DNA of 63,948 bases, filler included, from Octopus bimaculoides (GCF_001194135.2; 6 parts of 6 records of this genome joined end to end with filler, not necessarily neighbours in it); one strand, 5' to 3'; positions 1,233 through 35,024 are shown, counted from the whole stretch's first letter. A program made the numbers and translations. Notes: generated by a model from the letters alone, not told the origin.

Positions 1233-1307
<75 letters not shown>

Positions 1308-1864
1308 ATATATATATATATATATATTCATCAACGTACATACTAAGCTTGTGTACCTGCTAAAAATAACAATCAAACCTTTTTTAAACCGCAGAAGAAA
1401 ATAACACTGATTATAACTACAGAAATCGACCGTGTGCGAGACAACGGATCTAGAAAATTCTAGCTATATATTGTCTAGCTATATATTGTCTAGCTATATA
1501 TTGTGTAGTATTTAAACTCATGTGATAACACGTTCTGAGGAAGGTAAGGCTGTAATGCCAATCCAGAAACCGATCCACGTGAATCCAAATACTAGACAGT
1601 ATATTGAGCTGGATTTTATATAGCTATGTTGAATGCTTTTCTTGACCCGTTTGCTCGAAGACAATGGATTTCTGAAGTTATAATCAGTATTATTTTCTCC
1701 GCGGTTTAAATAAGAGATTTGACTGTTATTTTCAGTAAGGGCCTGCAGTTGCCTATATTAAAATTTATGTTATTATCAATGTAATTATATAACCCTAGAT
1801 AATAGTAGAGTTAATAATATCTTCGCAAATATTTTCTGCTGAATTATTTGTTCCGTATTCGAAT

Positions 1865-1915
<51 letters not shown>

Positions 1916-2177
1916 GTAAGTGGAGATACGGAAAAAGAGCACTCAACTCTATTGGAAGTTACATTGTTTCAAACATTGTTACAAATCCACTATATGTTTC
2001 ATAGACTTCGAAACGATGGAAATTAGAGTTGATGTCAACAGAATTTGAACAAGATTGTGAAGACGGACGAAATGCCGCTGAGTGTTTTGTCCGGCATGCT
2101 ATTGATTCTGTCAGCCCATCGTCTTTCCATCTAACAGTACTTTCTTATGATATTTAACATCTCTGTATATTCTTTCA

Positions 2178-3113
2178 TGTAAAGAATAAAAAGTTTAGAA
2201 TGGTACAACAATGCACTATAAAACAAGAAATGGACTATATACCTGTTGTAATTTAGTTATCTATAGTCCGATGATATTTCGGAATACAATTTCTTCTTCA
2301 GATATTCTTAGATTGAGTCTCTGCTATAAACTGCTTTGCAACGGCTTTTCTTTTTTTCGGAAGCCTCTCAGTAGTGGTCTCACGAAGCTCCTTCCGGAAT
2401 TCCTCATGAGAGTGCGTGAGGTCAGCTATGTTTCAATCTCGTGTGTGTTGGTACATCTGTAGAGCTACTTCTAAGTTATGTGTTATACGTGCAGCTTCTC
2501 TTTTTTTTTCTTTCCTGAGTTGTAATTCTGTGGAAGAAAAAATAAATAAAACTTCTGTACAGAGGTCAATGTAATCGACTCGTCCTTTGTTCAAAATTGC
2601 TGAACTTGTATCAATACTAGAAACCAAGATTTAAATTCGGTAAGGTGGCGAAAAAAAACATGAGAAAACAGGCTGAAGGTTGGTAATCAATATATTATTT
2701 AGCTACATCTGGATGTGTGTAGGTTCATTCTTAATAACATGCTCATGTATTGTTTATAACAAATAAAAAAGAGGAAAAGAAGGGGGTGAAAAACGAGAAG
2801 CTGCACGTATAACACGTAACTTAGAAGCAGCGCCACAGATGTACCAACACACACAAGACTGAAACATAGCCGACCTCACGCACTTCTCATGAGGAATTCT
2901 GGAAGGAGCTTCGTGAGACCTCTGCTGAGGCGCTTCCGAAAAAAAGAAAAGCCGTTGGAAAACAGTTTATAGCAAAGACTCCATCTAAGAATATCTGAAG
3001 GAATTGCATTCCGAAATATCATCGGACTATAGATAACTAAATTGCAACAGGTATATAGTCCATTTTTTTGTATTATAGTGCATTGTACCATTCAAAACTT
3101 TTTATTCTTTACA
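2178..3113. mobile_element. Fold-back/MITE-like element with ~320-bp inverted arms
   Basis: 2178-2500 is the approximate reverse complement of 2795-3113 (ends TGTAAAGAATAAAAAG...CTTTTTATTCTTTACA); ORFs 2211(+) and 2876(-) give near-identical peptides. TA dinucleotides at 2180 and 3110 could be a target duplication. Confidence 0.7.
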
Positions 3114-3175
3114 AACAATACACAATGCTTCAAGCGAATTACAATACTTTCCTATTCTTTCATGATCTTTTCCAG

Positions 3176-3319
3176 GTGAAAACTCTTTCCGAAGACATCT
3201 TACCGACGAACCTCTTCGGCTGATCGCCTCTATTACTTTCTTCACTGCGCTGATCGCAGTTGGTTACTTTCTATTTGGGAAGTTGAGAAGTAGAATGAAA
3301 ATTCTAACACGTGGAAACG
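3176..3319 (+). CDS. Cassette exon A, transmembrane-like, phase 1-1, 144 nt
   Basis: ctttcatgatcttttccAG|GTGAA...AACG|GTattttc; reads (G)ENSFRRHLTDEPLRLIASITFFTALIAVGYFLFGKLRSRMKILTRGN, no stop. Confidence 0.7.
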
Positions 3320-3970
3320 GTATTTTCATTTTATTCTTATATTTCAAAAATTTCTTTAAGACGTTTGATACCCCATTAGTACTTAATTTGTGTGTGTATA
3401 GTTTAAGTGTAAATCAGTTTCCTCTTTAGTCACAATGGCTAGCACGTTCAGAAAAGGAGCTAAGTCGACTGGAACCCGAAAGGCTGAAAGGCAAATTTGG
3501 CATCATCGGAATATAAACTCAGAACGTAAAGACGAACGAAATGCCGCTAAGCATTTTGTTCGGTGTGCTAACGATTGCTCTAGCTCGCCACCTTAACGAA
3601 TTTAAATCTTGGTTTCTAGTATTGATACAAGTTCAGCAATTTTGAACAAAGGACGAATCGATTACTTTGACTCCTGTACAGAAGTTTTTTTAATTTTTTT
3701 TTTTCCAGAGAATTTCAACTCAGATCCTAAAGACGAACGAAATCATTTTGTCCGGTATGCTAATGATGGCGTAATCTTAGCGTCTTTCGAAATCAAAATA
3801 TTGGTTTCAAGTTTTCACCCCAGATTAGCAAATTCGAACGGGGGTTGATTCGATTACATTCGTCTCTGTTCTCCAGCGTTATTCATTTTCTCAATCACAG
3901 ATCGCCTTCTCATATAATAATATTTTATTATGATTTTTAGCGTATCAAACTATTCTTTCATCTTTTTCAG

Positions 3971-4108
3971 GTAAAGATTCTACCCATAGAAATTTCACCA
4001 CCGAAATTCTTCTTCGGGGTCTGTATTTTGCTCTCATTATCGCCACGATCTTTCCTCTCGTCATTCCATGTCAGATGAGAATAGAGAAACATCTAAAATA
4101 CAAACAGG
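3971..4108 (+). CDS. Cassette exon B, transmembrane-like, phase 1-1, 138 nt
   Basis: tctttttcAG|GTAAAGATTCT...CAGG|GTattttg; reads (G)KDSTHRNFTTEILLRGLYFALIIATIFPLVIPCQMRIEKHLKYKQ, no stop. Confidence 0.7.
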
Positions 4109-4149
4109 GTATTTTGAATTTTATTCTTTTCTTTCATTGTTCTATTCTT

Positions 4150-4565
4150 TTAATGGTTTCAGTTTTCTGACTGCATCCATGCTGGAGTACTGTCTGAGGC
4201 ATTTAGTCGAATGAATCGACACCAGAACATTTTTTAATTTCAGCCTAATAGGTAACTTGTCAATCTCCTTTGCCAAAATATTACGGGTGCGTAAACGCCC
4301 TGACTCAGTTTGCCGAACAGTGATAGAGGGAAAAATACACACACACACACGCACGCACGCAAGCGCGCACACACACGCACGCAAGCACACACACACACAC
4401 ATATAGGAAGGGCTTCTTTCAGTTTACGTCTACCAAATCTATTCACAAGACTTTGGTCGGTCCAAGGCTATTGCAAAATACAGTTGCCTAATGTGCAACG
4501 TTGAACAGCTGAACCCGAAAGCTTGTGGCTGGTAAGCAAGCCTCTTACCACATAGCCACACCTGC
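4150..4565 (-). mobile_element. tRNA-derived SINE with internal (CA)n (abundant family here)
   Basis: Reverse complement of the ...GGCTxTGTGGTAAGxxGCTTGCTTACCA...GGTAGACGxAAACTGAAAGAAGCCC body; further copies at about 5270-5682(-), 20800-21222(-), 36770-36990(+), 37100-37510(+), 52225-52435(-) and 58555-58840(+). Confidence 0.75.
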
Positions 4566-5069
4566 ACCAATGCTTAATGCCTCACGGCTGCTTGTCTTGT
4601 GTATGTACAGTTAGTTGAAGTGGAAACTGGTTTCACATTTTGACACAACGTCTGCAACTTCAGGGAGAGTCTAAGTCAATTAAATCGATCGCTGGAGTTG
4701 CATCTCGTACTTATTTTATCGACCCAAAAAGATTAAAGGTAAAGTCGACCTCAGTGGAATTTCAACTCATAGCATAAAGCCGGACGAAATGTCATTAACA
4801 TTTTCTCCGGTGTACTAACGATTTTGCAGCATGTCACCTTCGAATTTTGATACAAATACTGCTTCTTGGAGGCCAAGATAAGTCGATCACACCGACCCCA
4901 TTACTCAAGTGTTAATTTTCCATTCAGAGAATTTGAACTAGGAACGAAAAGCCGGACGAAATGCCGTTAATAATTTTGTCCGACATTCTAAAGATTCTTC
5001 CAGCACATCAACTTCTCATGTGAAAATATTCCATTACGATATTTAATAATCTTTCATGATCTTTTTCAG

Positions 5070-5201
5070 ATGAAGATACTTTCATATCGATTTGCATTGT
5101 CGCCATTATCTTTGGGATTTTCTCAATCCCTCTCTTCTTTGCATGGCTCATAGCTTTTTACAAACTGTACAAAATGGGACAACAAATGGAGACTGTAACA
5201 G
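5070..5201 (+). CDS. Cassette exon C, transmembrane-like, phase 1-1, 132 nt
   Basis: ctttcatgatctttttcAG|ATGAAGAT...ACAG|GTaaaa; reads (D)EDTFISICIVAIIFGIFSIPLFFAWLIAFYKLYKMGQQMETVT, no stop. Confidence 0.7.
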
Positions 5202-6162
5202 GTAAAAAAAAAGGGATTTTGATCTTATTCTTTCTTTCATTCTCCTCTTCTTTTAATTATTTCAGTCATTTGATTGCAGCCTTGCTGGAGCACCGTCCTG
5301 TAGCGTTTCAGTCGAATGAATCGACCCCACTACTACCTTTTGAGCCTAGTACTTATTCTATTAGACTCTTTTGCCGAAATTCTAAGTTACGGGGACGTAA
5401 ACACACCGACACCAGTTGTCAAGAGGCGATGGGGCGACAAGTATAGACACACAGACATACACACATAAACACACACACATATATATTTACGTGTGTGTGT
5501 GTGTATGTGTGTGTAAGTAGATGAGGGGCTTCTTTCAGTTTTCGTCTTCCAAATCCACACACAAGTTTTAATCCGAGCGAGGCTATAGTAGAAGACACTT
5601 GCCGAAGGTGCCATGCCGAAGGACTGAACCCGAAAGCATGCGGCTTGGAAGCAAGCTTCGTACCACACAGCCACACCTGCACCTATGCTGGATACCCCAT
5701 TGTTACTTACTTTGCTAATATATAATTGGTTTAAGGAAAAATTTGTCTCATATTCTGCTCCGAGGTCAATTTTGGTGAAGAGGTTAAATCGATTTTATCG
5801 ATCTCAGTGCGCAGGTGGTACTTATTTTATTGACCCGAAACGATCAAAAATTAAGTCGATCTCGGTGAAATATCTATTTTACCAGCTTATCACCTTAATG
5901 AACCTAAACATTGGCTTCCCATTTTTGACCCAAGTCCAACTAAAATAGGCACCGGGATAAGTCCATAACACCAACCCTAGTTCTCAAGTATTATTTATTT
6001 TATGAACCCCAAAATGTGAACCCAGAAAGTAAAGCCGTATGAAAAACCACTAACCATTTTGTCCGGCATGCTAACAATCTTACAAGCTCATCGCCTACCC
6101 ATCTGGTAATACTCCTTTATGATATTTAGCATATTATATTAATCCATCATGTGCTTTTCCAG

Positions 6163-6303
6163 GTGAAGATTCTCTTCCATCGATTTGTACTATCTGGATT
6201 GTCATTGCGTTTTTATCTATTGCTCCTTCCATTGCATGGGCCACAGCTGCTTACTGTCTGCTCAAAATGACAATACAAATGATAACTCAAAAATGGAAAA
6301 ATG
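6163..6303 (+). CDS. Cassette exon D, transmembrane-like, 141 nt, homologous donor mutated (CT instead of GT)
   Basis: cttttccAG|GTGAAGATTCT; reads (G)EDSLPSICTIWIVIAFLSIAPSIAWATAAYCLLKMTIQMITQKWKN, followed by ctattttgatt where paralogues have gtattttgatt. Confidence 0.5.
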
Positions 6304-7062
6304 CTATTTTGATTTATTCTTTTAAAATTTATTTTATTTGATTGATGCCCCAATGCTAATTATTTTGGCTCTGTACAGTTGGTTAAAGTGGTGACTGGTT
6401 TTATATTTTGGCACAAGGCCAGCAATTTGAGGCAGAGGCTAAATCGAGTACATCGACCCCATTGTTCAGCTGGTACTTATTTTATCGATCCCGAAATGAT
6501 GACAAGCAAAGTCAACTTCGGAGGAATTTGAACTTAGAATGTAAAGATGGATGAAATGACACAAATCACTTTGTCCGGCATGCCAACGATTCCACAAGCT
6601 GGCTGACTTGTATAATAAATAATATTGGTTTCATATTTTGGCACAAGGCCAGTAATTTCGGGAAGGTCGTAAGTTGAATGCTTAAACTCTACTCCTAGCT
6701 GGTCCTTATTTTATCGAACCCTAAAAGTATGAGATGTAAAGTATGAGTTAAAATTGAACTCCGAATGTAAAGAAGGGCCAAACGCCGCTAAGCATTTTGT
6801 CCGGTGCGCTAACGTTTCCGCCAGCTCATCGCTTTACTAAAGATAAATAAAGACCAGCAATTTTGGGACCGGAATTAAGTCGTATATATCGACACGCAGT
6901 GCTCAACTGATATTTAATTTTATCCACTCCGGAATTTGAACTCAGAACGTAAAACCGGACGAAGTGCTGCCAACAATTTTGCTCAATGATCTCACGATTC
7001 TACCTGCTCCTTGCCTTCTCATGCGATAATGTTCCATTATGATATTTCATGATCTATTCCAG

Positions 7063-7179
7063 GTGAAGATTCTCAACAACGAAATCGTAATTCCGCCATT
7101 GTTCCTCTGTATGTACCTCTTCCTGAATTCATTGTAATGATAGTGGCTCTTATCTTTTCGTGCAGAAAATGTGAACAGG
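7063..7179 (+). CDS. Cassette exon E, hydrophobic, phase 1-1, 117 nt
   Basis: gatctattccAG|GTGAAGATTCT...CAGG|GTatttg; reads (G)EDSQQRNRNSAIVPLYVPLPEFIVMIVALIFSCRKCEQ, no stop. Confidence 0.65.
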
Positions 7180-7735
7180 GTATTTGAAATTTATTATTTT
7201 ATTTAAAACTAATTATTTTGTATGATTGATATCTCGTTGTTACTTACTTTGGTTACGTACCGTAGGATTTAGTGTAAATTCGTTTCTAGTTTGGTACAAA
7301 TCAAGCAAATTCAAGGGTGGGGTTCAGTCGATTTCCTCGACCCTAGCAGTCCGCAGCTGATACTTTATCCATCAGTCCTCGATTACTGGTAAAATCGATC
7401 TCAGTCGAATTTGAACACGGAATGTATTGACTGACGATAAGCATCTGTGCATTTTCTCCAGTGTGCTCACGATTCTGCCAAATCACCGCCTTAAAACAAA
7501 GATTGTTTTAAAATTTTGACACAAAGCCTGCAATATAAGAAGTGGGGTGAAGTCTATTACATCGACCCCAGTGTTCCAGTGTTATTTATTTTATCAACCT
7601 CCTATTATGAACTCAGAACGTGTATCCGGACAAAACGCTGCTTAGTGTTTTTTTCCGTGCTCAACGTCTTCTTGTGTAAAAATACTGCATTATGATATTT
7701 AGCGTTTTATAACAATCTTTCATCATTATTTCCAG

Positions 7736-7846
7736 GTGCAGGATGTCCCACATGTCTTCTCGCTAGTGTTGTCTCCATACTTCTTCTAAGCATAGCACTT
7801 TTCTATTGGTTGAAGAAGAGAACTCAAATTCGAAAATGGGAAAGAG
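7736..7846 (+). CDS. Cassette exon F, transmembrane-like, phase 1-1, 111 nt
   Basis: cattatttccAG|GTGCA...AGAG|GTattttg; reads (G)AGCPTCLLASVVSILLLSIALFYWLKKRTQIRKWER, a typical TM followed by a basic stop-transfer patch. Confidence 0.75.
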
Positions 7847-8739
7847 GTATTTTGATTTTATTCATTTATTAAAAGTTTTGTTTTAGGTGTCCCATTGCTT
7901 CTTACTTTGTCTATGTAGCGTTGGTTCAAGTGTAAATTGGTTCCATATTTTAACACAATGCTAGGAAGTCCGAGAGAGGGGCCANNNNNNNNNNNNNNNN
8001 NNNNNNNNNNNNNNNNNNNNNNNNNNNNNNNNNNNNNNNNNNNNNNNNNNNNNNNNNNNNNNNNNNNNNNNNNNNNNNNNNNNNNNNNNNNNNNNNNNNN
8101 NNNNNNNNNNNNNNNNNNNNNNNNNNNNNNNNNNNNNNNNNNNNNNNNNNNNNNNNNNNNNNNNNNNNNNNNNNNNNNNNNNNNNNNNNNNNNNNNNNNN
8201 NNNNNNNNNNNNNNNNNNNNNNNNNNNNNNNNNNNNNNNNNNNNNNNNNNNNNNNNNNNNNNNNNNNNNNNNNNNNNNNNNNNNNNNNNNNNNNNNNNNN
8301 NNNNNNNNNNNNNNNNNNNNNNNNNNNNNNNNNNNNNNNNNNNNNNNNNNNNNNNNNNNNNNNNNNNNNNNNNNNNNNNNNNNNNNNNNNNNNNNNNNNN
8401 NNNNNNNNNNNNNNNNNNNNNNNNNNNNNNNNNNNNNNNNNNNNNNNNNNNNNNNNNNNNNNNNNNNNNNNNNNNNNNNNNNNCTAGATGTTGTTTTTAA
8501 AAGTTTGACACAAGGCCAGCAATTTCGGGGTCGAGGGTTAGTCGATTACATCAACTCCAGTATTCGAGTATTATTTATTTTATAAGCCTCGGAATTTGAA
8601 TTCAGAAGGTAAAACCGGATGAAATGACGCTAAGCATTTTGGCCGGCATGCTTATGAATCTACTAGCACATCGTTTTATGTAATAATTCTCCATTATGAT
8701 ATTTAGCATATTATTGTACTCTTTCATGATTTTTTCCAG

Positions 8740-8874
8740 CTAAAAAATACCTCATAGATATTTGTGTTGTTACCATTCGCCTTCTGGAAGGAATTTTGAT
8801 GTTTATCGCTGTACCTTTCTTGTGGATTAGAAGTCGTTTGCAGACGATGAGTCAAAGACTAACCCGTAAAAAAG
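8740..8874 (+). CDS. Cassette exon G, transmembrane-like, phase 1-1, 135 nt
   Basis: ctttcatgattttttccAG|CTAAA...AAAG|GTattttg; reads (A)KKYLIDICVVTIRLLEGILMFIAVPFLWIRSRLQTMSQRLTRKK, no stop. Confidence 0.7.
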
Positions 8875-9310
8875 GTATTTTGATTTTATTCTTTTCTTTA
8901 AAAAAATGTTTTAGATGATTCATGCACCATTGCTTCTTACTTTGTGGAGTTTGTTTCAGTGTAAATTAAGTTCATATTTTGGCACGCGGCTAGCAAGTTC
9001 AGGCCATGGACCGGCATGTTAAGTATTCTACAAGATTGACATCTTGTAACAAACTTTATTTTAAATTATTTCTTAAGATCAGAAATTTCAAAGGAGGGGA
9101 TACGTCGATCATATAGACCCGGCTCCAATGCTCAGTTCGTAATTATTTTATCAGCCTGAAAATAATGAGAGGCAATGAGTACCACCGTGGAATTAGAACT
9201 CTGAACGTAAAGACGGGCGAAATACTGTGATGGATTCTGACTAGAATGCAACCGATTCCATCAGTTCACCACCTTAATAATAATACTGCTACTAATAATA
9301 ATAATAAATT

Positions 9311-12300
9311 TGTTTATTGGCCACAAGGGCTTACATAAAATTACATTAAGAGACATACAACAAGATAAAAGACAAAAACAGGACAATACAATGGGATTTG
9401 CAACGTGTAAACAATATAAATAACAACAAAAATTAAAAATAGGGGAGGCATATTAAGGATCTCCTGGAAAAACCGCAGGTGCACGCTCAGAATTGGTCCT
9501 TTTACACTGGCCATTCTTCCAACATTCACCCATCATTCAACAAACTTGCTACAAGTCTACACTTCCCTCTCCACCCTCAACTTCCTTTTCAAGTGAAACT
9601 TGAAAAAGTTGTTCAGGGCTTGGNNNNNNNNNNNNNNNNNNNNNNNNNNNNNNNNNNNNNNNNNNNNNNNNNNNNNNNNNNNNNNNNNNNNNNNNNNNNN
9701 NNNNNNNNNNNNNNNNNNNNNNNNNNNNNNNNNNNNNNNNNNNNNNNNNNNNNNNNNNNNNNNNNNNNNNNNNNNNNNNNNNNNNNNNNNNNNNNNNNNN
9801 NNNNNNNNNNNNNNNNNNNNNNNNNNNNNNNNNNNNNNNNNNNNNNNNNNNNNNNNNNNNNNNNNNNNNNNNNNNNNNNNNNNNNNNNNNNNNNNNNNNN
9901 NNNNNNNNNNNNNNNNNNNNNNNNNNNNNNNNNNNNNNNNNNNNNNNNNNNNNNNNNNNNNNNNNNNNNNNNNNNNNNNNNNNNNNNNNNNNNNNNNNNN
10001 NNNNNNNNNNNNNNNNNNNNNNNNNNNNNNNNNNNNNNNNNNNNNNNNNNNNNNNNNNNNNNNNNNNNNNNNNNNNNNNNNNNNNNNNNNNNNNNNNNNN
10101 NNNNNNNNNNNNNNNNNNNNNNNNNNNNNNNNNNNNNNNNNNNNNNNNNNNNNNNNNNNNNNNNNNNNNNNNNNNNNNNNNNNNNNNNNNNNNNNNNNNN
10201 NNNNNNNNNNNNNNNNNNNNNNNNNNNNNNNNNNNNNNNNNNNNNCCAGTAAATGGGGCAAGGGACGACAGTTAAGTGATGATAAATAACGGGTGCGATG
10301 TACTCATTCGTCACCTCTACTCGACCTTTCAGGGACACTTTCTCTCGGCCCATTTCTGGGTGGGATTGGCTACGCTGCCTGTCACCTCATCCCAGTTCTT
10401 CTCCAGCTGGTAGTCCGTACCAAACCAGACTCCAAGCGACTTAACGCCACCGTTTGTCAAGCATCCCACCACGCTGTTAGACGGCATGGCCTTGCATCTC
10501 CATGTGCCGAGTTGCAAACCGCGTGAAGTTTTGCTCCTTTCACCGCTTCATATTCCTGTAGCGTTTCGCCAATCAGGTCTATATGTCTATAGCTCGACAC
10601 TATGACAGTGATATCAGCCTATGTATAACTTCTAGAATTCCCTTGCCGCCAACCTCTTTTGGCCAAGAAGAGAAGGCAATTTTTATTTTTTTAATGGCTG
10701 TAGCGAAAAAGGTAGTATGGTGGGCACGTTTGAAAAGGCCTAAGACAGGCACTTTCTTCTTTGGCTAAGCCCTCATCAACTTTTTCAAGTTTCACTTGAA
10801 ATGGAATATGACACACATCCTAGATCACGCGAGACACCCCTCAACACCTCCAAATTCCACAGAAATGGTTCAAGAGTTAGTAAAGGGGAGGAGAGAGTGA
10901 ATCCTTGATGGATCGAACGCAAGATTGCGAATGGCTCCGACAGATGACCATTCACCCGAATAACCGAGCAGATGCCGCTGTATAAAGCAGTGATCCAACT
11001 GCGGAAACTAGAAGAAAACCGGCTACCAAGTATTGATGGTCGATAATATCAAAAGCTTTAAATTGATCTAAATTGATAAGCGCCGCAACCATGCTAGCTT
11101 CGTTATCCACACTCTCTATGATGTAGCGCATAAGAAGGAGATTATCGTGTGTACTCCTTGCTGGGATGGTGCATGTCTTTGCCTTGCCAACCAGCTTGTC
11201 CATGAGAAGCTCTAATCTCTTGGCTAACGCTTTGGTCAAAATCTTCAATTCTGCATTGAGCAGAGTGATGGGCCTCCTTGTCTGGGTCCTTTCTCAGCAA
11301 TGCCACTACTCTTCGACAGACAAAAGTAGGAATTCTCCCATTTTGGTGCCAGTTGCAGTAGACTTTTGCTAAGAGGCCAGCAAACAAATCTGGCATCGAA
11401 TTGCAAAGTTCGTAGGGCAGACCATCCAAACCCGGCGATCCACCTCGTGAAACTTTTCATCACTTTCAATATTTACGCGGCTGTTATCGGCCTTTCACAG
11501 TACTCCGCCTCGTTCACCAAGAGTAGAAGCATGCCGTCCGTGTAGACACCGAAGTCTGCTCTGCTATCCGTCCTACCATTCGTCCCGAACAGTCGTGCAA
11601 AGCGCTGTTGAACAGACGCACACATCAGTTTCGGCTCGAACACCACGCATCCGCTCTTGTCTACCAAACACCGAATGATAGNNNNNNNNNNNNNNNNNNN
11701 NNNNNNNNNNNNNNNNNNNNNNNNNNNNNNNNNNNNNNNNNNNNNNNNNNNNNNNNNNNNNNNNNNNNNNNNNNNNNNNNNNNNNNNNNNNNNNNNNNNN
11801 NNNNNNNNNNNNNNNNNNNNNNNNNNNNNNNNNNNNNNNNNNNNNNNNNNNNNNNNNNNNNNNNNNNNNNNNNNNNNNNNNNNNNNNNNNNNNNNNNNNN
11901 NCGTGCCTTAGCTCTGTCAACACAGCCTTCGTGTTTGGCGTCGAAAAGTTGGTCGAGGGCAAAATTCGCCGCCAATACATTAGCTGCGATGCCTGTTCTA
12001 TGCGCTTCAACTAACTTTCTAACACAATCTCCCTCTGTTCTACTTCTTTCTACCGCTAATATTTTGCTAAACCTAATCGATTCTACTCTAATTGCCATTT
12101 TAAGAGCAAACCACCAGTTGTTGTCGACGACTGCACCCATCAACGCCCGCATAACTAATTCGCTAATCCGATCTCTGTAAGCTTAACCCGCCTGTAACGA
12201 CGTATTCAGCTCTCAATAACCGGAACGCTGTCTATGAAGCCTATCTAAGTCGACCGTACAGATCATGTGAAATTTGTGGCTGTGTAGCCGACCATGTGAA

Positions 12301-13375
12301 ATTGTGGACACCGTATGTTATCCTTGTCCGCTGGCCTACAAAATACCATATCTAGATACGATCTAGATGACCTAATGCCTTTTGTCCAAGTCCACATCGT
12401 CATATTCGGGTAATCTAATCGGCACCTGTGAGACAGCTGAAAACGTATGAGGAGGTTTTGGAGGCTTTTGTACTCCCCTCTCCTATCAGATACCCCCACG
12501 CAATCGAAACGTCCATCTAAGACAGCGTTCCAATTCCCTACTAATACTAAAGTCCGAAACGTTCCCAGGAAAACCTCCAGATGCTTGAAGTAATCAGACC
12601 GCCCTACCCCTGTCGGAGCATAAATACCCACCACTCGGAAAGCACCAGCGTCACTGCTGTTGTTCACATCTAAGACCACAAACTTACCTTCTGGATCCAG
12701 GAAGAATGCCTTTATTTTGAAATCCAGACCCTTCCGGAATAGTGCCACAGTACTACTACCGCCTTCTTCCCGGCAGACACTGAGATACAATAATCTCGTA
12801 TCTACCGAAAAAGCTTATGAGGTCTCGTGGGTCGGATAGTCTTGATTCACTAATGGCTGCAACATCTACAATAATGGACCTCAGGTTATTTAAATCTTGA
12901 CCTTGTTCCAAGGCCTCTGATATTTATACAACCTATTCTGAGTGTCACCATGGTAAAATAAATTTAGGATGGAGAAGAGCTCTACTTACCATTGTTGTCT
13001 AGCAGGACCACTGTTCTGTGTTGTAGGCGTTTCCATGAGCTTTTATACATTCTATGAGAAAATGTTTTTTGAAATGACCCAGTAGCATTTGGAAAATTAA
13101 ATTAATATTTAGCGTGTTGTAGGTGTCCTGTTTTAGTTTTAAAATTTGTTTGTCTGGTAGTGATGCATTGTGTGTTGGGAAGACAAAGTTTTCCGTTGTG
13201 ATGTCTGTGTTTTCTCTGATGCATTTAAGAAGTGTGTATTGTCGGTGTCGATGGCTGTGAAGTTGGTGGTGTTTGTGCAGTCTGTGCTGTGTACGGTTTC
13301 GGTGTTTGAGGTGGTAGTGCTGGTGGAAGTGTTTTTGTTGCTGTTGGTTGCACTTGAGGTGCCGAGTTCCCCTCA
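9311..13375 (-). mobile_element. Tx1/L1-clade LINE, degenerate and gapped
   Basis: Endonuclease-like peptide 12263..12790 (FVVLDV...GIYAP...LVGNWNAVLD); RT fragments (LINLDQFKAFDIIDHQYL); C-terminal FFKFHLKRKLRVEREV; bounded by (AAT)n. Confidence 0.8.
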
Positions 13376-14763: not shown

Positions 14764-14827
14764 TGACTGAGAGAGAATTTCGGGATCCTGAAGTCAATCC
14801 GTTATCAAATGAAGATCCGGGTCATTT
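14764..14827 (+). CDS. Candidate phase 1 exon following the TM cassette array (possible shared cytoplasmic tail)
   Basis: Pyrimidine tract ccttgtttctcatttattgtcAG| and donor TT|GTgagt; only the phase 1 frame is open: (V)TEREFRDPEVNPLSNEDPGH; read-through gives HL*. Confidence 0.35.
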
Positions 14828-15400
14828 GTGAGTGACCTCTCTGCGAGGTAATACTAAGCGCATCCCTTCTTTTGCATCTCTTATTGAAGTGGCTTTAATG
14901 TAAATATCGAGGACGCTGACACGTCCTACATGTACTACATGTTTCTTTCTTGAAAAATAATCCTTTCCATACTTTCTCTGTCTAGCTAATGCTGTCTATC
15001 TTTTTGCATATTTTATAAACAAATATTTCGATTAAGCAGACGATAATTAATTTTATTAAAGAGCATACGTAAAGTGAGGGAGTTTAACAAACTAGAGATA
15101 CGTAAGCCAGCTACACTTTTCGCTGTCTAACCAGTAATATAGTTCAAGATATTTGCCAATCGAGAATATTCCATTTCATTTCCATTCAAAGATCTCTCTA
15201 TGATCATATCTATTAATATTTCTCTCAATTCGCATGACTTAATATATCGGTAGGCCCACCTACCAACCTACCTACCTACTGACATGCTCACCTGTCTTTT
15301 TTGTCATTCTATTTAAGCATCTACCATATCCACTTTCCCTTCTGCCGTTGTATGTATCTGTTTATTCATAATAACGTTAAGCATTCAATCTAAAGTAATA

Positions 15401-15459
<59 letters not shown>

Positions 15460-15462
<3 letters not shown>

Positions 15463-16105: not shown

Positions 16106-16160
<55 letters not shown>

Positions 16161-16170
16161 GTCATGATCA

Positions 16171-16209
<39 letters not shown>

Positions 16210-17834
16210 GCAGTCTTGCTGCAGTATGGCCACAGGTTTTATCTTGAACGCGTAAAAGATAAAAGTGTAACTTCCACAGATGTTGGGTAAACTAATTTCA
16301 CTTTAATTTAACTCTCTTTAGATGTATCTTATAAAGTTTAAGTTTATAAACAGTCATGACGTTGTTTTATTTATAACAAACACAGAAAAATGTAAAGTTC
16401 TTCGTTTCCTTCACTCAACTATTATAGACCATTTCTCTGTAATAATATAATCCTTCTCTCTCTAATAATATACACCTTACTCCTCCCTGTATCTCACTCA
16501 TAATTGTTCACTGATTCAACTATTTCCTTTCCGTGCTGTTCTTTGTCGTTCTTTGTTTAGGTCTTTCCTTTACCTCTTCCTCTCTCTATTTCGCTCTATA
16601 TATTACTCCATTAAGTTATAACTACTCTTCATGACGTAAGGACAGAAACTGAGAGAGAAACGAGGAAAGTATTCTAATAATAAAACATTCAGACTTTCAT
16701 GGATTTAACCGATGTTAGATATATAATAGGTAAAAGGATACAGAAGTAGATATTAAATTAGATATTTCACAAATATTTAGACAAGCATATAGGAAGTTCG
16801 ATAGATAAATCGATACGTTGAGAGCTTCTCTAAATTTATATGTACAAATACATATGTGTATTTTTGTATGGGTGTATGTGTGTGTATATACATATATATT
16901 AAATATATTATCTATATAATATAGCAAAACTGTAAAGTGTAAATTTTGTGGGTATTACTTATTTTCCATTTCATATATTTTACAGTTGCTAATTGGGAAT
17001 TGCAAATTTTTACCTGTAAAAATAAACATATAAACTAAAAATGAATGATTTCCAACCAGAAATTCTTCGTACAGAAAAAAAAAATATATAATTGAAATTT
17101 TACATTTGGATAAAGCGTTATGTCTCTACATAAAAATCATGAGCAGCACGAATAACTCGGTGAAGGAAAGAGAGTGTTACACACACACGCGCGAAGATAT
17201 TCACATCGACATGTAATAATCATATTGAAAATAGATCAAATCACAATAATTTTTATCACAAATAACATTAGAAGACCACGTTCAATCCAATTATATAATC
17301 ATATTTTAAATGCATTTTTTCTTTTAAATAATATATCTTATAATTCATAAAGGATGTCCAGACCCAACAGTATACATACCAATATATAGGTTCCACACAT
17401 CTAAAATTCAAGTTTAGATACGACAACCATATTTCCTCTTTGAAGCATGAAGCTAAATCTAACAATACATCTCTAGCACCATTATATGGAATTTAAAATT
17501 AAAAATATGCGAGACACGCCATCTTGGACAATTGTTACAAAAGCTACTACTCATAAAATAGGTAATATATTTTGTAATCTATATTAAACAGAATTTTGTT
17601 ATCTATATTAAAGTGTACAGATCATAGTAACGAGCACAAAATTTAATTCTCAGAAGCGTTCATGAAAAAAATTAGCACATTTCAATACTTTAGATGTTGC
17701 CATAAAATTGATGCTTTAAAGTATAACATACTTTATTAACCAATAATAATTATAACAATTATTTTGAATATTAATATATGAAAGTGTACGCCTTGCTTAT
17801 ATAGGTATCGGTTGAAAGTACGTGTATACTAGTC

Positions 17835-34291: not shown

Positions 34292-35024
34292 NNNNNNNNN
34301 NNNNNNNNNNNNNNNNNNNNNNNNNNNNNNNNNNNNNNNNNNNNNNNNNNNNNNNNNNNNNNNNNNNNNNNNNNNNNNNNNNNNNNNNNNNNNNNNNNNN
34401 NNNNNNNNNNNNNNNNNNNNNNNNNNNNNNNNNNNNNNNNNNNNNNNNNNNNNNNNNNNNNNNNNNNNNNNNNNNNNNNNNNNNNNNNNNNNNNNNNNNN
34501 NNNNNNNNNNNNNNNNNNNNNNNNNNNNNNNNNNNNNNNNNNNNNNNNNNNNNNNNNNNNNNNNNNNNNNNNNNNNNNNNNNNNNNNNNNNNNNNNNNNN
34601 NNNNNNNNNNNNNNNNNNNNNNNNNNNNNNNNNNNNNNNNNNNNNNNNNNNNNNNNNNNNNNNNNNNNNNNNNNNNNNNNNNNNNNNNNNNNNNNNNNNN
34701 NNNNNNNNNNNNNNNNNNNNNNNNNNNNNNNNNNNNNNNNNNNNNNNNNNNNNNNNNNNNNNNNNNNNNNNNNNNNNNNNNNNNNNNNNNNNNNNNNNNN
34801 NNNNNNNNNNNNNNNNNNNNNNNNNNNNNNNNNNNNNNNNNNNNNNNNNNNNNNNNNNNNNNNNNNNNNNNNNNNNNNNNNNNNNNNNNNNNNNNNNNNN
34901 NNNNNNNNNNNNNNNNNNNNNNNNNNNNNNNNNNNNNNNNNNNNNNNNNNNNNNNNNNNNNNNNNNNNNNNNNNNNNNNNNNNNNNNNNNNNNNNNNNNN
35001 NNNNNNNNNNNNNNNNNNNNNNNN

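Follow-up and report, generated by a model that had tools for sequence, protein, structure and literature searches.

Seven Transmembrane Exons and Their Gene

The stretch of DNA analyzed here (the window; 63,948 nucleotides (nt), filler included, joined from six parts of the Octopus bimaculoides genome GCF_001194135.2 and identical to CM046630.1) carries at 3176-8874, on the plus strand, a tandem array of seven small exons, each encoding a hydrophobic helix. These are genuine coding exons of LOC106873011, an uncharacterised receptor gene of the immunoglobulin (Ig) type, and the array is the membrane-anchor part of this gene, whose family has two Ig domains and is confined to Octopus. Transmembrane (TM) exon 1 lies at 3176-3319 (144 nt, phase 1-1; peptide ENSFRRHLTDEPLRLIASITFFTALIAVGYFLFGKLRSRMKILTRGN), is bounded by the acceptor TCTTTCATGATCTTTTCCAG and the donor G|GTATTTTC, and is included in the protein record XP_014775695.1. 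It is followed by exon 2 at 3971-4108 (138 nt; KDSTHRNFTTEILLRGLYFALIIATIFPLVIPCQMRIEKHLKYKQ), exon 3 at 5070-5201 (132 nt; EDTFISICIVAIIFGIFSIPLFFAWLIAFYKLYKMGQQMETVT; donor in use AG|GTAAAA) and exon 4 at 6163-6303 (141 nt), an open frame reading EDSLPSICTIWIVIAFLSIAPSIAWATAAYCLLKMTIQMITQKWKN with a degraded acceptor motif and CT as its donor dinucleotide. Exon 5 at 7063-7179 (117 nt; EDSQQRNRNSAIVPLYVPLPEFIVMIVALIFSCRKCEQ) encodes a marginal helix containing a glutamate and three prolines, exon 6 occupies 7736-7846 (111 nt; AGCPTCLLASVVSILLLSIALFYWLKKRTQIRKWER), and exon 7 at 8740-8874 (135 nt; KKYLIDICVVTIRLLEGILMFIAVPFLWIRSRLQTMSQRLTRKK) places an arginine and a glutamate within its helix and basic residues on both sides.

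All seven lengths, from 111 to 144 nt, are multiples of 3, and the frame that begins at the third base (phase 1-1) is open in every exon, while the other two frames contain one to five stops each. About 10% of random 135-nt windows in this DNA are open in a given frame, and shuffling puts the joint probability of seven open phase 1-1 frames at ~4e-9. The best 19-residue Kyte-Doolittle means range from 2.1 to 2.7, and the acceptor and donor motifs occur only at these seven sites in 64 kb of the locus. A preliminary description had reported the array with these positions, lengths, phase and stop-free frames; every element of that observation was recovered, and it lies far beyond chance. The same description had each hydrophobic stretch usually followed by lysine or arginine. 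The helix is present in all seven exons, but the basic residues that follow it are strong in exons 1, 6 and 7 and weak in exons 3 and 5.

A peptide search with the seven exons retrieved one protein, the 351-residue product of O. bimaculoides LOC106873011, for which the two RefSeq transcript variants (XP_014775695.1 and XP_014775696.1) and UniProt A0A0L8H3I4 are identical. The public model joins exons 1, 2, 3, 5, 6 and 7 serially and omits exactly the donor-less exon 4. Its last coding exon, at 14764-14831 on the plus strand, has a phase-1 acceptor, reads (V)TEREFRDPEVNPLSNEDPGHL, encodes VTEREFRDPEVNPLSNEDPGHL and closes with the stop codon TGA at 14829-14831. The absence of upstream exons from the window, also remarked on earlier, is explained by their location in the longer locus sequence L001 (window position equals L001 position minus 39223), where the first two exons of the model, at 10001-10051 and 14991-15158, lie 24-29 kb upstream. 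The first of these properly spans L001 9953-10051, a family-wide exon (VKPKIEIK...CYQGK) with its own acceptor. The annotated start codon is an internal methionine of this exon, and the public model is therefore 5'-truncated. Together, L001 9953-10051 and 14991-15158 encode the second Ig-like domain, which is 69% identical to that of the closest paralogue. No exon for the signal peptide or the first Ig domain was found in the locus; the gap at L001 7501-9420 may hold both. A literature search for seven LOC identifiers found no paper that mentions one, and among protein-database entries derived from transcriptome or read assemblies, none carries any of the seven peptides.

A Two-Domain Ig Family Restricted to Octopus

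A profile search and an exhaustive profile-free search found relatives of the gene in three species only, O. bimaculoides, O. sinensis and O. vulgaris; all are unnamed, and Pfam and PDB sequence searches returned no significant match. The paralogue LOC106868859 (P0012) has a hydrophobic N-terminal leader and, according to AlphaFold2, two beta-sandwich domains (predicted local distance difference test, pLDDT, ~95); the best Foldseek matches of this ectodomain are butyrophilin, Neph1/Rst and nectin D1-D2, with E ~1e-10. From the leader and domains of this paralogue, the family is predicted to have the composition of Ig-superfamily type I proteins, namely a signal peptide, an Ig-fold ectodomain and a membrane anchor. 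The earlier suggestion of a type I membrane protein is thus right in kind: an Ig-superfamily membrane protein with an extracellular N-terminus is supported by the Ig-like exons located upstream and by the signal peptide and two confidently predicted Ig-like domains of the paralogues.

LOC106868859 lies on another chromosome and has three TM exons, and its three-exon array is conserved in O. sinensis and O. vulgaris. A second paralogue, LOC106877375, is situated 1.4 Mb away on the same chromosome as LOC106873011 and has five TM exons followed by a 7-kb gap. Across the family, TM exons number 1, 3, at least 5 or 7 per gene. The two larger paralogous arrays keep the same exon order and the same exon-specific motifs (CRKCE after exon 5 and its counterpart d, RN[FL]TTE in exon 2 and its counterpart b). 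No annotated orthologue of LOC106873011 or LOC106877375 was found in O. sinensis or O. vulgaris.

Variation in exon-array splicing is annotated elsewhere in the family, at Ig exons and not at a TM exon: the O. sinensis genes LOC115225115 and LOC115225116 (P0015, P0017, P0019, P0025) are distant members with tandem V-like Ig repeats, and their many isoforms (up to X18) vary in the number of repeats included. The O. vulgaris protein P0016 was considered as a case of an optional second TM exon and rejected; its extra segment comes from reading through into the intron that follows the TM exon, and strict orthology does not hold for the locus.

Exon Module, Splice Signals and Flanking Repeats

Each TM exon is embedded in a module whose flanks align. 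In module 2, the upstream element and the branch, pyrimidine and acceptor motif cover 3925-3970 (plus strand), with counterparts at 5031-5069, 6114-6162, 7035-7062, 7687-7735, 8691-8739 and, for module 1, 3153-3175. On the downstream side, module 7 has its weak donor and U-rich element GTATTTTGATTTTATTCTTTTCTTTAAAA at 8875-8905, and the corresponding blocks of the other modules begin at 3320, 4109, 5214, 6304, 7180 and 7847. Mean pairwise identity is ~0.7-0.95 at -60 to -1 and 0.65-0.82 at +1 to +20, compared with 0.37-0.53 in exon interiors, which bears out the earlier remark on conserved flanks and divergent interiors; flanks are better conserved than coding sequence in cross-gene comparisons as well (0.7-0.95 vs 0.37-0.53). 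All 15 modules of LOC106873011, LOC106877375 and LOC106868859 share a tail of a short interspersed nuclear element (SINE), an element reading CCATTATGATATTTAGCAT, TCTTTCATGATCTTTTCCAG as acceptor, an exon that starts in the pattern GTGAAGATTCT, and G|GTATTTTGATTTTATTC as weak donor, and every module length, measured to the ancestral donor, is a multiple of 3. Downstream, 11 of these modules also have a SINE head, which is missing after exons 2 and 3 of LOC106873011 and after exons b and c of the paralogue. A more distant relative, LOC115232395, has its sole TM exon enclosed by the same flank motifs, which are therefore an ancestral trait of the family's TM exon and not specific to arrays.

In the array introns (window 2041-8685), one SINE-like repeat occurs at least 11 times, as copies or fragments and nearly always on the plus strand; a SINE tail lies ~62 nt upstream of every TM exon and a SINE head ~100 nt downstream of exons 1 and 4-7. 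Module 1 departs from the common arrangement: it lacks TATGATATTT at the usual place because a foldback (inverted-repeat) insertion of 936 bp at 2178-3113 has displaced the element to 2142-2160. The arms of the insertion, at 2178-2506 and 2789-3113, are 92-97% complementary and enclose a loop of 282 nt, and the insertion ends 62 nt upstream of the exon 1 acceptor. The displaced flank itself occupies 2041-2179 (plus strand), aligns with the upstream flanks of modules 2-7, and comprises the SINE tail, the upstream element and, at 2168-2179, the opening 12 nt of the acceptor motif (TATTCTTTCATG), which recur at 3153-3164 as a direct duplication. In the pre-mRNA, the insertion would form a long double-stranded stem beside the first TM exon.

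Two donors have changed. The ancestral donor position of exon 3 (5213/5214) now reads GG|GA, and a new AG|GTAAAA 12 nt upstream keeps the phase; a shifted donor of this type recurs in paralogue exon c, and exon b of the paralogue has likewise replaced its lost ancestral donor by a new one in phase. Exon 4, a young duplicate of exon 3 (synonymous divergence, dS, ~0.29), reads G|CT instead of G|GT, has no in-phase GT nearby and is skipped by the public gene model. It is probably a dead cassette. Both details correct the preliminary description, which had given all modules one common donor, and its "up to seven" interchangeable segments become at most six, since exon 4 is left without a donor.

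An assembly gap at 7985-8483 lies within the intron between exons 6 and 7, starting 138 nt after the exon 6 donor and stopping 256 nt before the exon 7 acceptor. Being wholly intronic, it interrupts no exon and is crossed by no reading frame of interest. SINE-like sequence borders it on either side, and the GenBank assembly carries the same gap. With the estimated gap length, exon 7 follows exon 6 at a spacing of 1004 nt, inside the range of the other neighboring pairs (673-1099 nt, with introns of 556-961 nt), and an extra module hidden in the gap is not indicated.

The region is otherwise repeat-rich and poorly assembled, with six assembly gaps and several long microsatellites (ATT, GATA, CA/CG-rich and ATT/AAT runs) at window positions 1237-1330, 1864-1915, 4340-4400, 15385-15460 and 16150-16210. 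Besides 7985-8483, a gap lies at 9624-10245. Fragments of retrotransposon reading frames lie on the minus strand upstream of the array (106-486) and in the 5.9-kb last intron (10952-11248 and 12263-12790); the first two match the reverse transcriptase family RVT_1 below the Pfam cut-off, and the third has no Pfam match. A search of the window against Rfam matched nothing.

Divergence and Selection

Between the two paralogous arrays, the pooled ratio of nonsynonymous to synonymous divergence (dN/dS) is 0.74, with values near 1 for several exon pairs. In the three-exon gene, comparison of O. bimaculoides with O. sinensis gave 0.80 for TM exons and 0.54 for Ig exons, at a dS of ~0.23-0.26 in both. 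The gene evolves fast throughout, and its TM exons evolve fastest. Exon interiors are slightly more diverged than SINE-derived intron (identity ~0.48 vs 0.55-0.6). Evolution of the interiors faster than neutral was considered and dropped, given this slight excess and a pooled dN/dS below 1, and the diversifying selection proposed earlier is not demonstrated by these ratios or by interiors that differ barely more than the neighboring intron. Interspecies conservation of the flanks was likewise discarded as a sign of alternative splicing, as constitutive Ig exons, used as a control, have equally conserved flanks. The O. bimaculoides and O. sinensis orthologues of the three-exon paralogue (L003 and L005) are 90-100% identical over alignable intron beside every exon, Ig and TM alike. 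Synonymous sites in their exons differ by ~20% and thus appear to change faster than the flanking intron.

Serial or Alternative Use of the Transmembrane Exons

The analysis establishes the exons with their reading frame, the gene family, the common module and the serial form of the public models; how the exons are spliced, how the protein is threaded through the membrane and how the copies arose are inferred. With no more than even confidence, we slightly favor a reading in which the main mRNA joins the TM exons in series to produce a CD47-like multi-pass Ig protein. A single ancestral module, consisting of a SINE tail, ~60 nt of conserved intron, a TM exon, and a weak GTATTT donor with a U-rich tract, would have been copied in tandem. 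SINEs bracket every module, and unequal crossing-over between them is therefore the obvious and most likely route of copying. The main mRNA would join the spliceable exons 1, 2, 3, 5, 6 and 7, setting an Ig ectodomain on a multi-pass membrane domain with probably five true spans (exons 1, 2, 3, 5 and 6) and exon 7 as a marginal C-terminal segment, while exon 4 would be a recent extra copy silenced at its donor.

Serial models have been annotated for LOC106873011, for LOC106877375 (five exons) and for LOC106868859 (three exons) together with the O. sinensis and O. vulgaris orthologues of the last. The annotated isoforms of the three array genes differ only at the 5' end, and none swaps or skips a TM exon. 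When exons 1, 2, 3, 5 and either 6 or 7 are placed in series, the loop charges are approximately +6, 0, +1, +1 to +2, and +6; this alternation, seen here and in the paralogue, fits the positive-inside rule for serial spans. Exons 2, 5 and 7 encode marginal helices (summed insertion energies of +0.9 to +3.5), and an intramembrane arginine in exon 2 and glutamate in exon 5 are both conserved in the paralogue. Marginal helices with such conserved charged residues are typical of multi-pass bundles and make poor lone anchors. It also speaks for serial inclusion that the silenced exon is the youngest duplicate, exon 4, that the public model omits exactly this exon, that the paralogous arrays keep their exon order and exon-specific motifs, that no mechanism of exclusivity was found, and that the flank motifs are not specific to arrays. 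Two exon joins that exist only under serial splicing would each create a four-cysteine cluster: the exon 5-6 join here (7166-7179 with 7736-7755; CRKCEQGAGCPTC) and the d-e join of the paralogue (L002 34436-34449 with 34926-34951; CRKCEKGEECLSGFC).

Several observations weigh against serial inclusion. Where few reads support a locus, gene predictors tend to chain its in-frame exons. The TM exons of the three genes, 15 in all, share one polarity: the N-flank is acidic or neutral and the C-flank basic, as is expected of independent anchors with N-terminus outside and C-terminus inside. Six serial spans would leave the basic tail outside the cell unless exon 7 is non-spanning. The TM donors are uniformly weak (GTATTT) compared with GTAAGT or GTGAGG at Ig exons, and weak donors, symmetry and high dN/dS are frequent features of exons under regulated cassette splicing. 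A predicted structure of the serial protein, made from a four-sequence alignment, was uninformative (pLDDT 52, predicted template modeling score 0.26).

In the rival reading, that of the preliminary description, the cassettes are used alternatively, each mRNA containing a single one of the six TM exons that can be spliced, or a few of them in varying combination; we consider this plausible but less likely. The products would be single-pass Ig receptors of type I, each variant having its own TM and juxtamembrane segment, and regulation would act through the upstream element, the purine-rich start of the exon (GTGAAGATTCT), and the weak donor with its U-rich tract. The Ig exon, the TM exons and the tail exon are all phase 1-1, so any choice stays in frame, including the choice of none, which would give a soluble form. 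Besides the uniform polarity, alternative use is favored by the tandem, homologous and symmetric exons with lengths in multiples of 3 in all 15 modules, by the stereotyped weak donors and flanks that exceed the coding sequence in conservation in paralogues on two chromosomes, and by a dN/dS in TM exons (0.74-0.80) above that of Ig exons (0.54). Six serial helices also fit the positive-inside rule less well at the C-terminus, and there is precedent in tandem exon duplication, which commonly gives rise to mutually exclusive exons (PMC9013439, PMC6071210).

Other evidence is unfavorable to alternative use. No public isoform swaps or skips a TM exon, even though the annotation of these genes includes 5' isoforms and that of a relative many isoforms; exons 5 and 7 would be poor lone anchors; and the same flank motifs surround the necessarily constitutive single TM exon of LOC115232395. 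The array itself, with seven homologous phase 1-1 exons of 111-144 nt and shared flank motifs, has the form of a mutually exclusive cluster, but none of the mechanisms that enforce exclusivity finds support in it. Introns of 556-961 nt leave no room for steric exclusion, every intron has the same GT-AG context and thus offers no incompatible spliceosomes, and lengths that are all multiples of 3 mean that frameshift with nonsense-mediated decay cannot police the choice. For docking/selector pairing, the best duplex energies of three conserved elements against the readable intron, at the locus and in the paralogue, were no better than those of shuffled controls, in a search left incomplete by large assembly gaps. 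Two docking candidates were rejected: the paralogue has not kept AAAAGAATCATTTGAAAG, which directly follows the Ig exon, and CTGGAAAAG..GTCATGAGG, at L001 15560, does not occupy a homologous position there. The mutually exclusive use proposed in the preliminary description is accordingly not supported, every public model being serial and no known enforcing mechanism having been found. We regard as somewhat unlikely its stricter form, in which one of six live TM/juxtamembrane cassettes is picked per transcript through the conserved splice module, a seventh having been lost recently. If true, it would constitute the largest known repertoire of alternative membrane anchors, and one ectodomain could couple to different membrane partners or signaling states.

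Both splicing patterns would be functionally unimportant if the locus were decaying or barely expressed, that is, a young lineage-specific duplicate, 5'-truncated in the assembly, with TM modules drifting nearly neutrally and public models that are largely ab initio. Such a state would account for dN/dS near 1 in several exon pairs, an exon that is already dead, the lack of annotated LOC106873011 and LOC106877375 orthologues in O. sinensis and O. vulgaris, and introns full of SINE, foldback and long interspersed nuclear element (LINE) debris; the missing signal-peptide and first Ig exons point in the same direction, unless they sit in the L001 gap mentioned above. Drift is difficult to reconcile with seven open frames (P ~4e-9) and 15 of 15 module lengths that are still multiples of 3, with donor losses repaired in phase twice (exon 3 and its counterpart c, and paralogue exon b), with splice-proximal motifs conserved far above distal intron, and with a three-copy paralogue that is intact in three species. 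We consider decay improbable.

Whether the exons are used serially or alternatively, the locus is an unusually clear case of membrane-anchor evolution, in which an uncharacterised, fast-evolving and Octopus-restricted family multiplies its anchor exon. If serial inclusion is correct, a single genus holds a graded set of 1-, 3-, 5- and 6-7-helix proteins obtained by copying one TM exon with its splice signals, and would offer a live example of a single-pass protein becoming multi-pass. Alternative use would instead be a new way to diversify a receptor, at its membrane and juxtamembrane segment and not at its binding domain.

Comparison with Known Systems

In Fas, skipping of the TM exon 6, which has a weak donor and a U-rich TIA-1 site, produces a soluble receptor. 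The exons described here are similarly symmetric TM exons with a weak donor followed by a U-rich tract, and skipping all of them would remain in frame (A|TG ACT ...). Fas, however, has a single such exon and not an array.

The closest parallel for alternative use is Dscam1 exon 17, with its two mutually exclusive TM exons. The two systems share tandem, same-phase, paralogous TM/juxtamembrane exons in an Ig-superfamily gene, and conserved intronic elements. They differ in copy number (seven here, two in Dscam1) and in ectodomain (two Ig domains here, ten Ig and six fibronectin type III domains in Dscam), and the public models of LOC106873011 are serial. Complementarity of the docking/selector kind, as described for Dscam (PMC7430681), was not detected here. 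Kinship with Dscam is contradicted by the lack of sequence homology, the two Ig-like domains, relatives found only in Octopus and the absence of any Pfam match. Of the Dscam-like system that had been proposed, the type of gene and the TM nature of the exons stand, whereas exclusivity and diversifying selection are unproven and the public models show the opposite arrangement.

More generally, the array belongs with tandem exon duplications, defined by adjacent homologous exons of the same frame and similar length (PMC9013439, PMC6071210, PMC8373072). Most known cases comprise two or three copies that replace part of a fold, whereas here each copy is a whole helix, and serial inclusion is therefore structurally possible.

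The architecture expected from serial inclusion is closest to that of CD47, which has an IgV domain, five membrane spans and an alternatively spliced short tail (PMC10902115). With an Ig ectodomain, a short tail and, between them, short-looped spans in odd number, CD47 resembles the 3-, 5- and 6/7-exon genes in their serial reading. The likeness is architectural and not homologous, the Pfam families of CD47 giving no match even at E up to 10; the Octopus proteins have two Ig domains and not one, their spans are visibly paralogous copies of one module, and their family is restricted to Octopus. The loop charges of exons 1, 2, 3, 5 and 6 fit the positive-inside rule for such a protein, yet every exon also has the polarity of a lone anchor. 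CD47 nevertheless demonstrates that five spans carrying an Ig domain make a workable design, a further point for serial inclusion.

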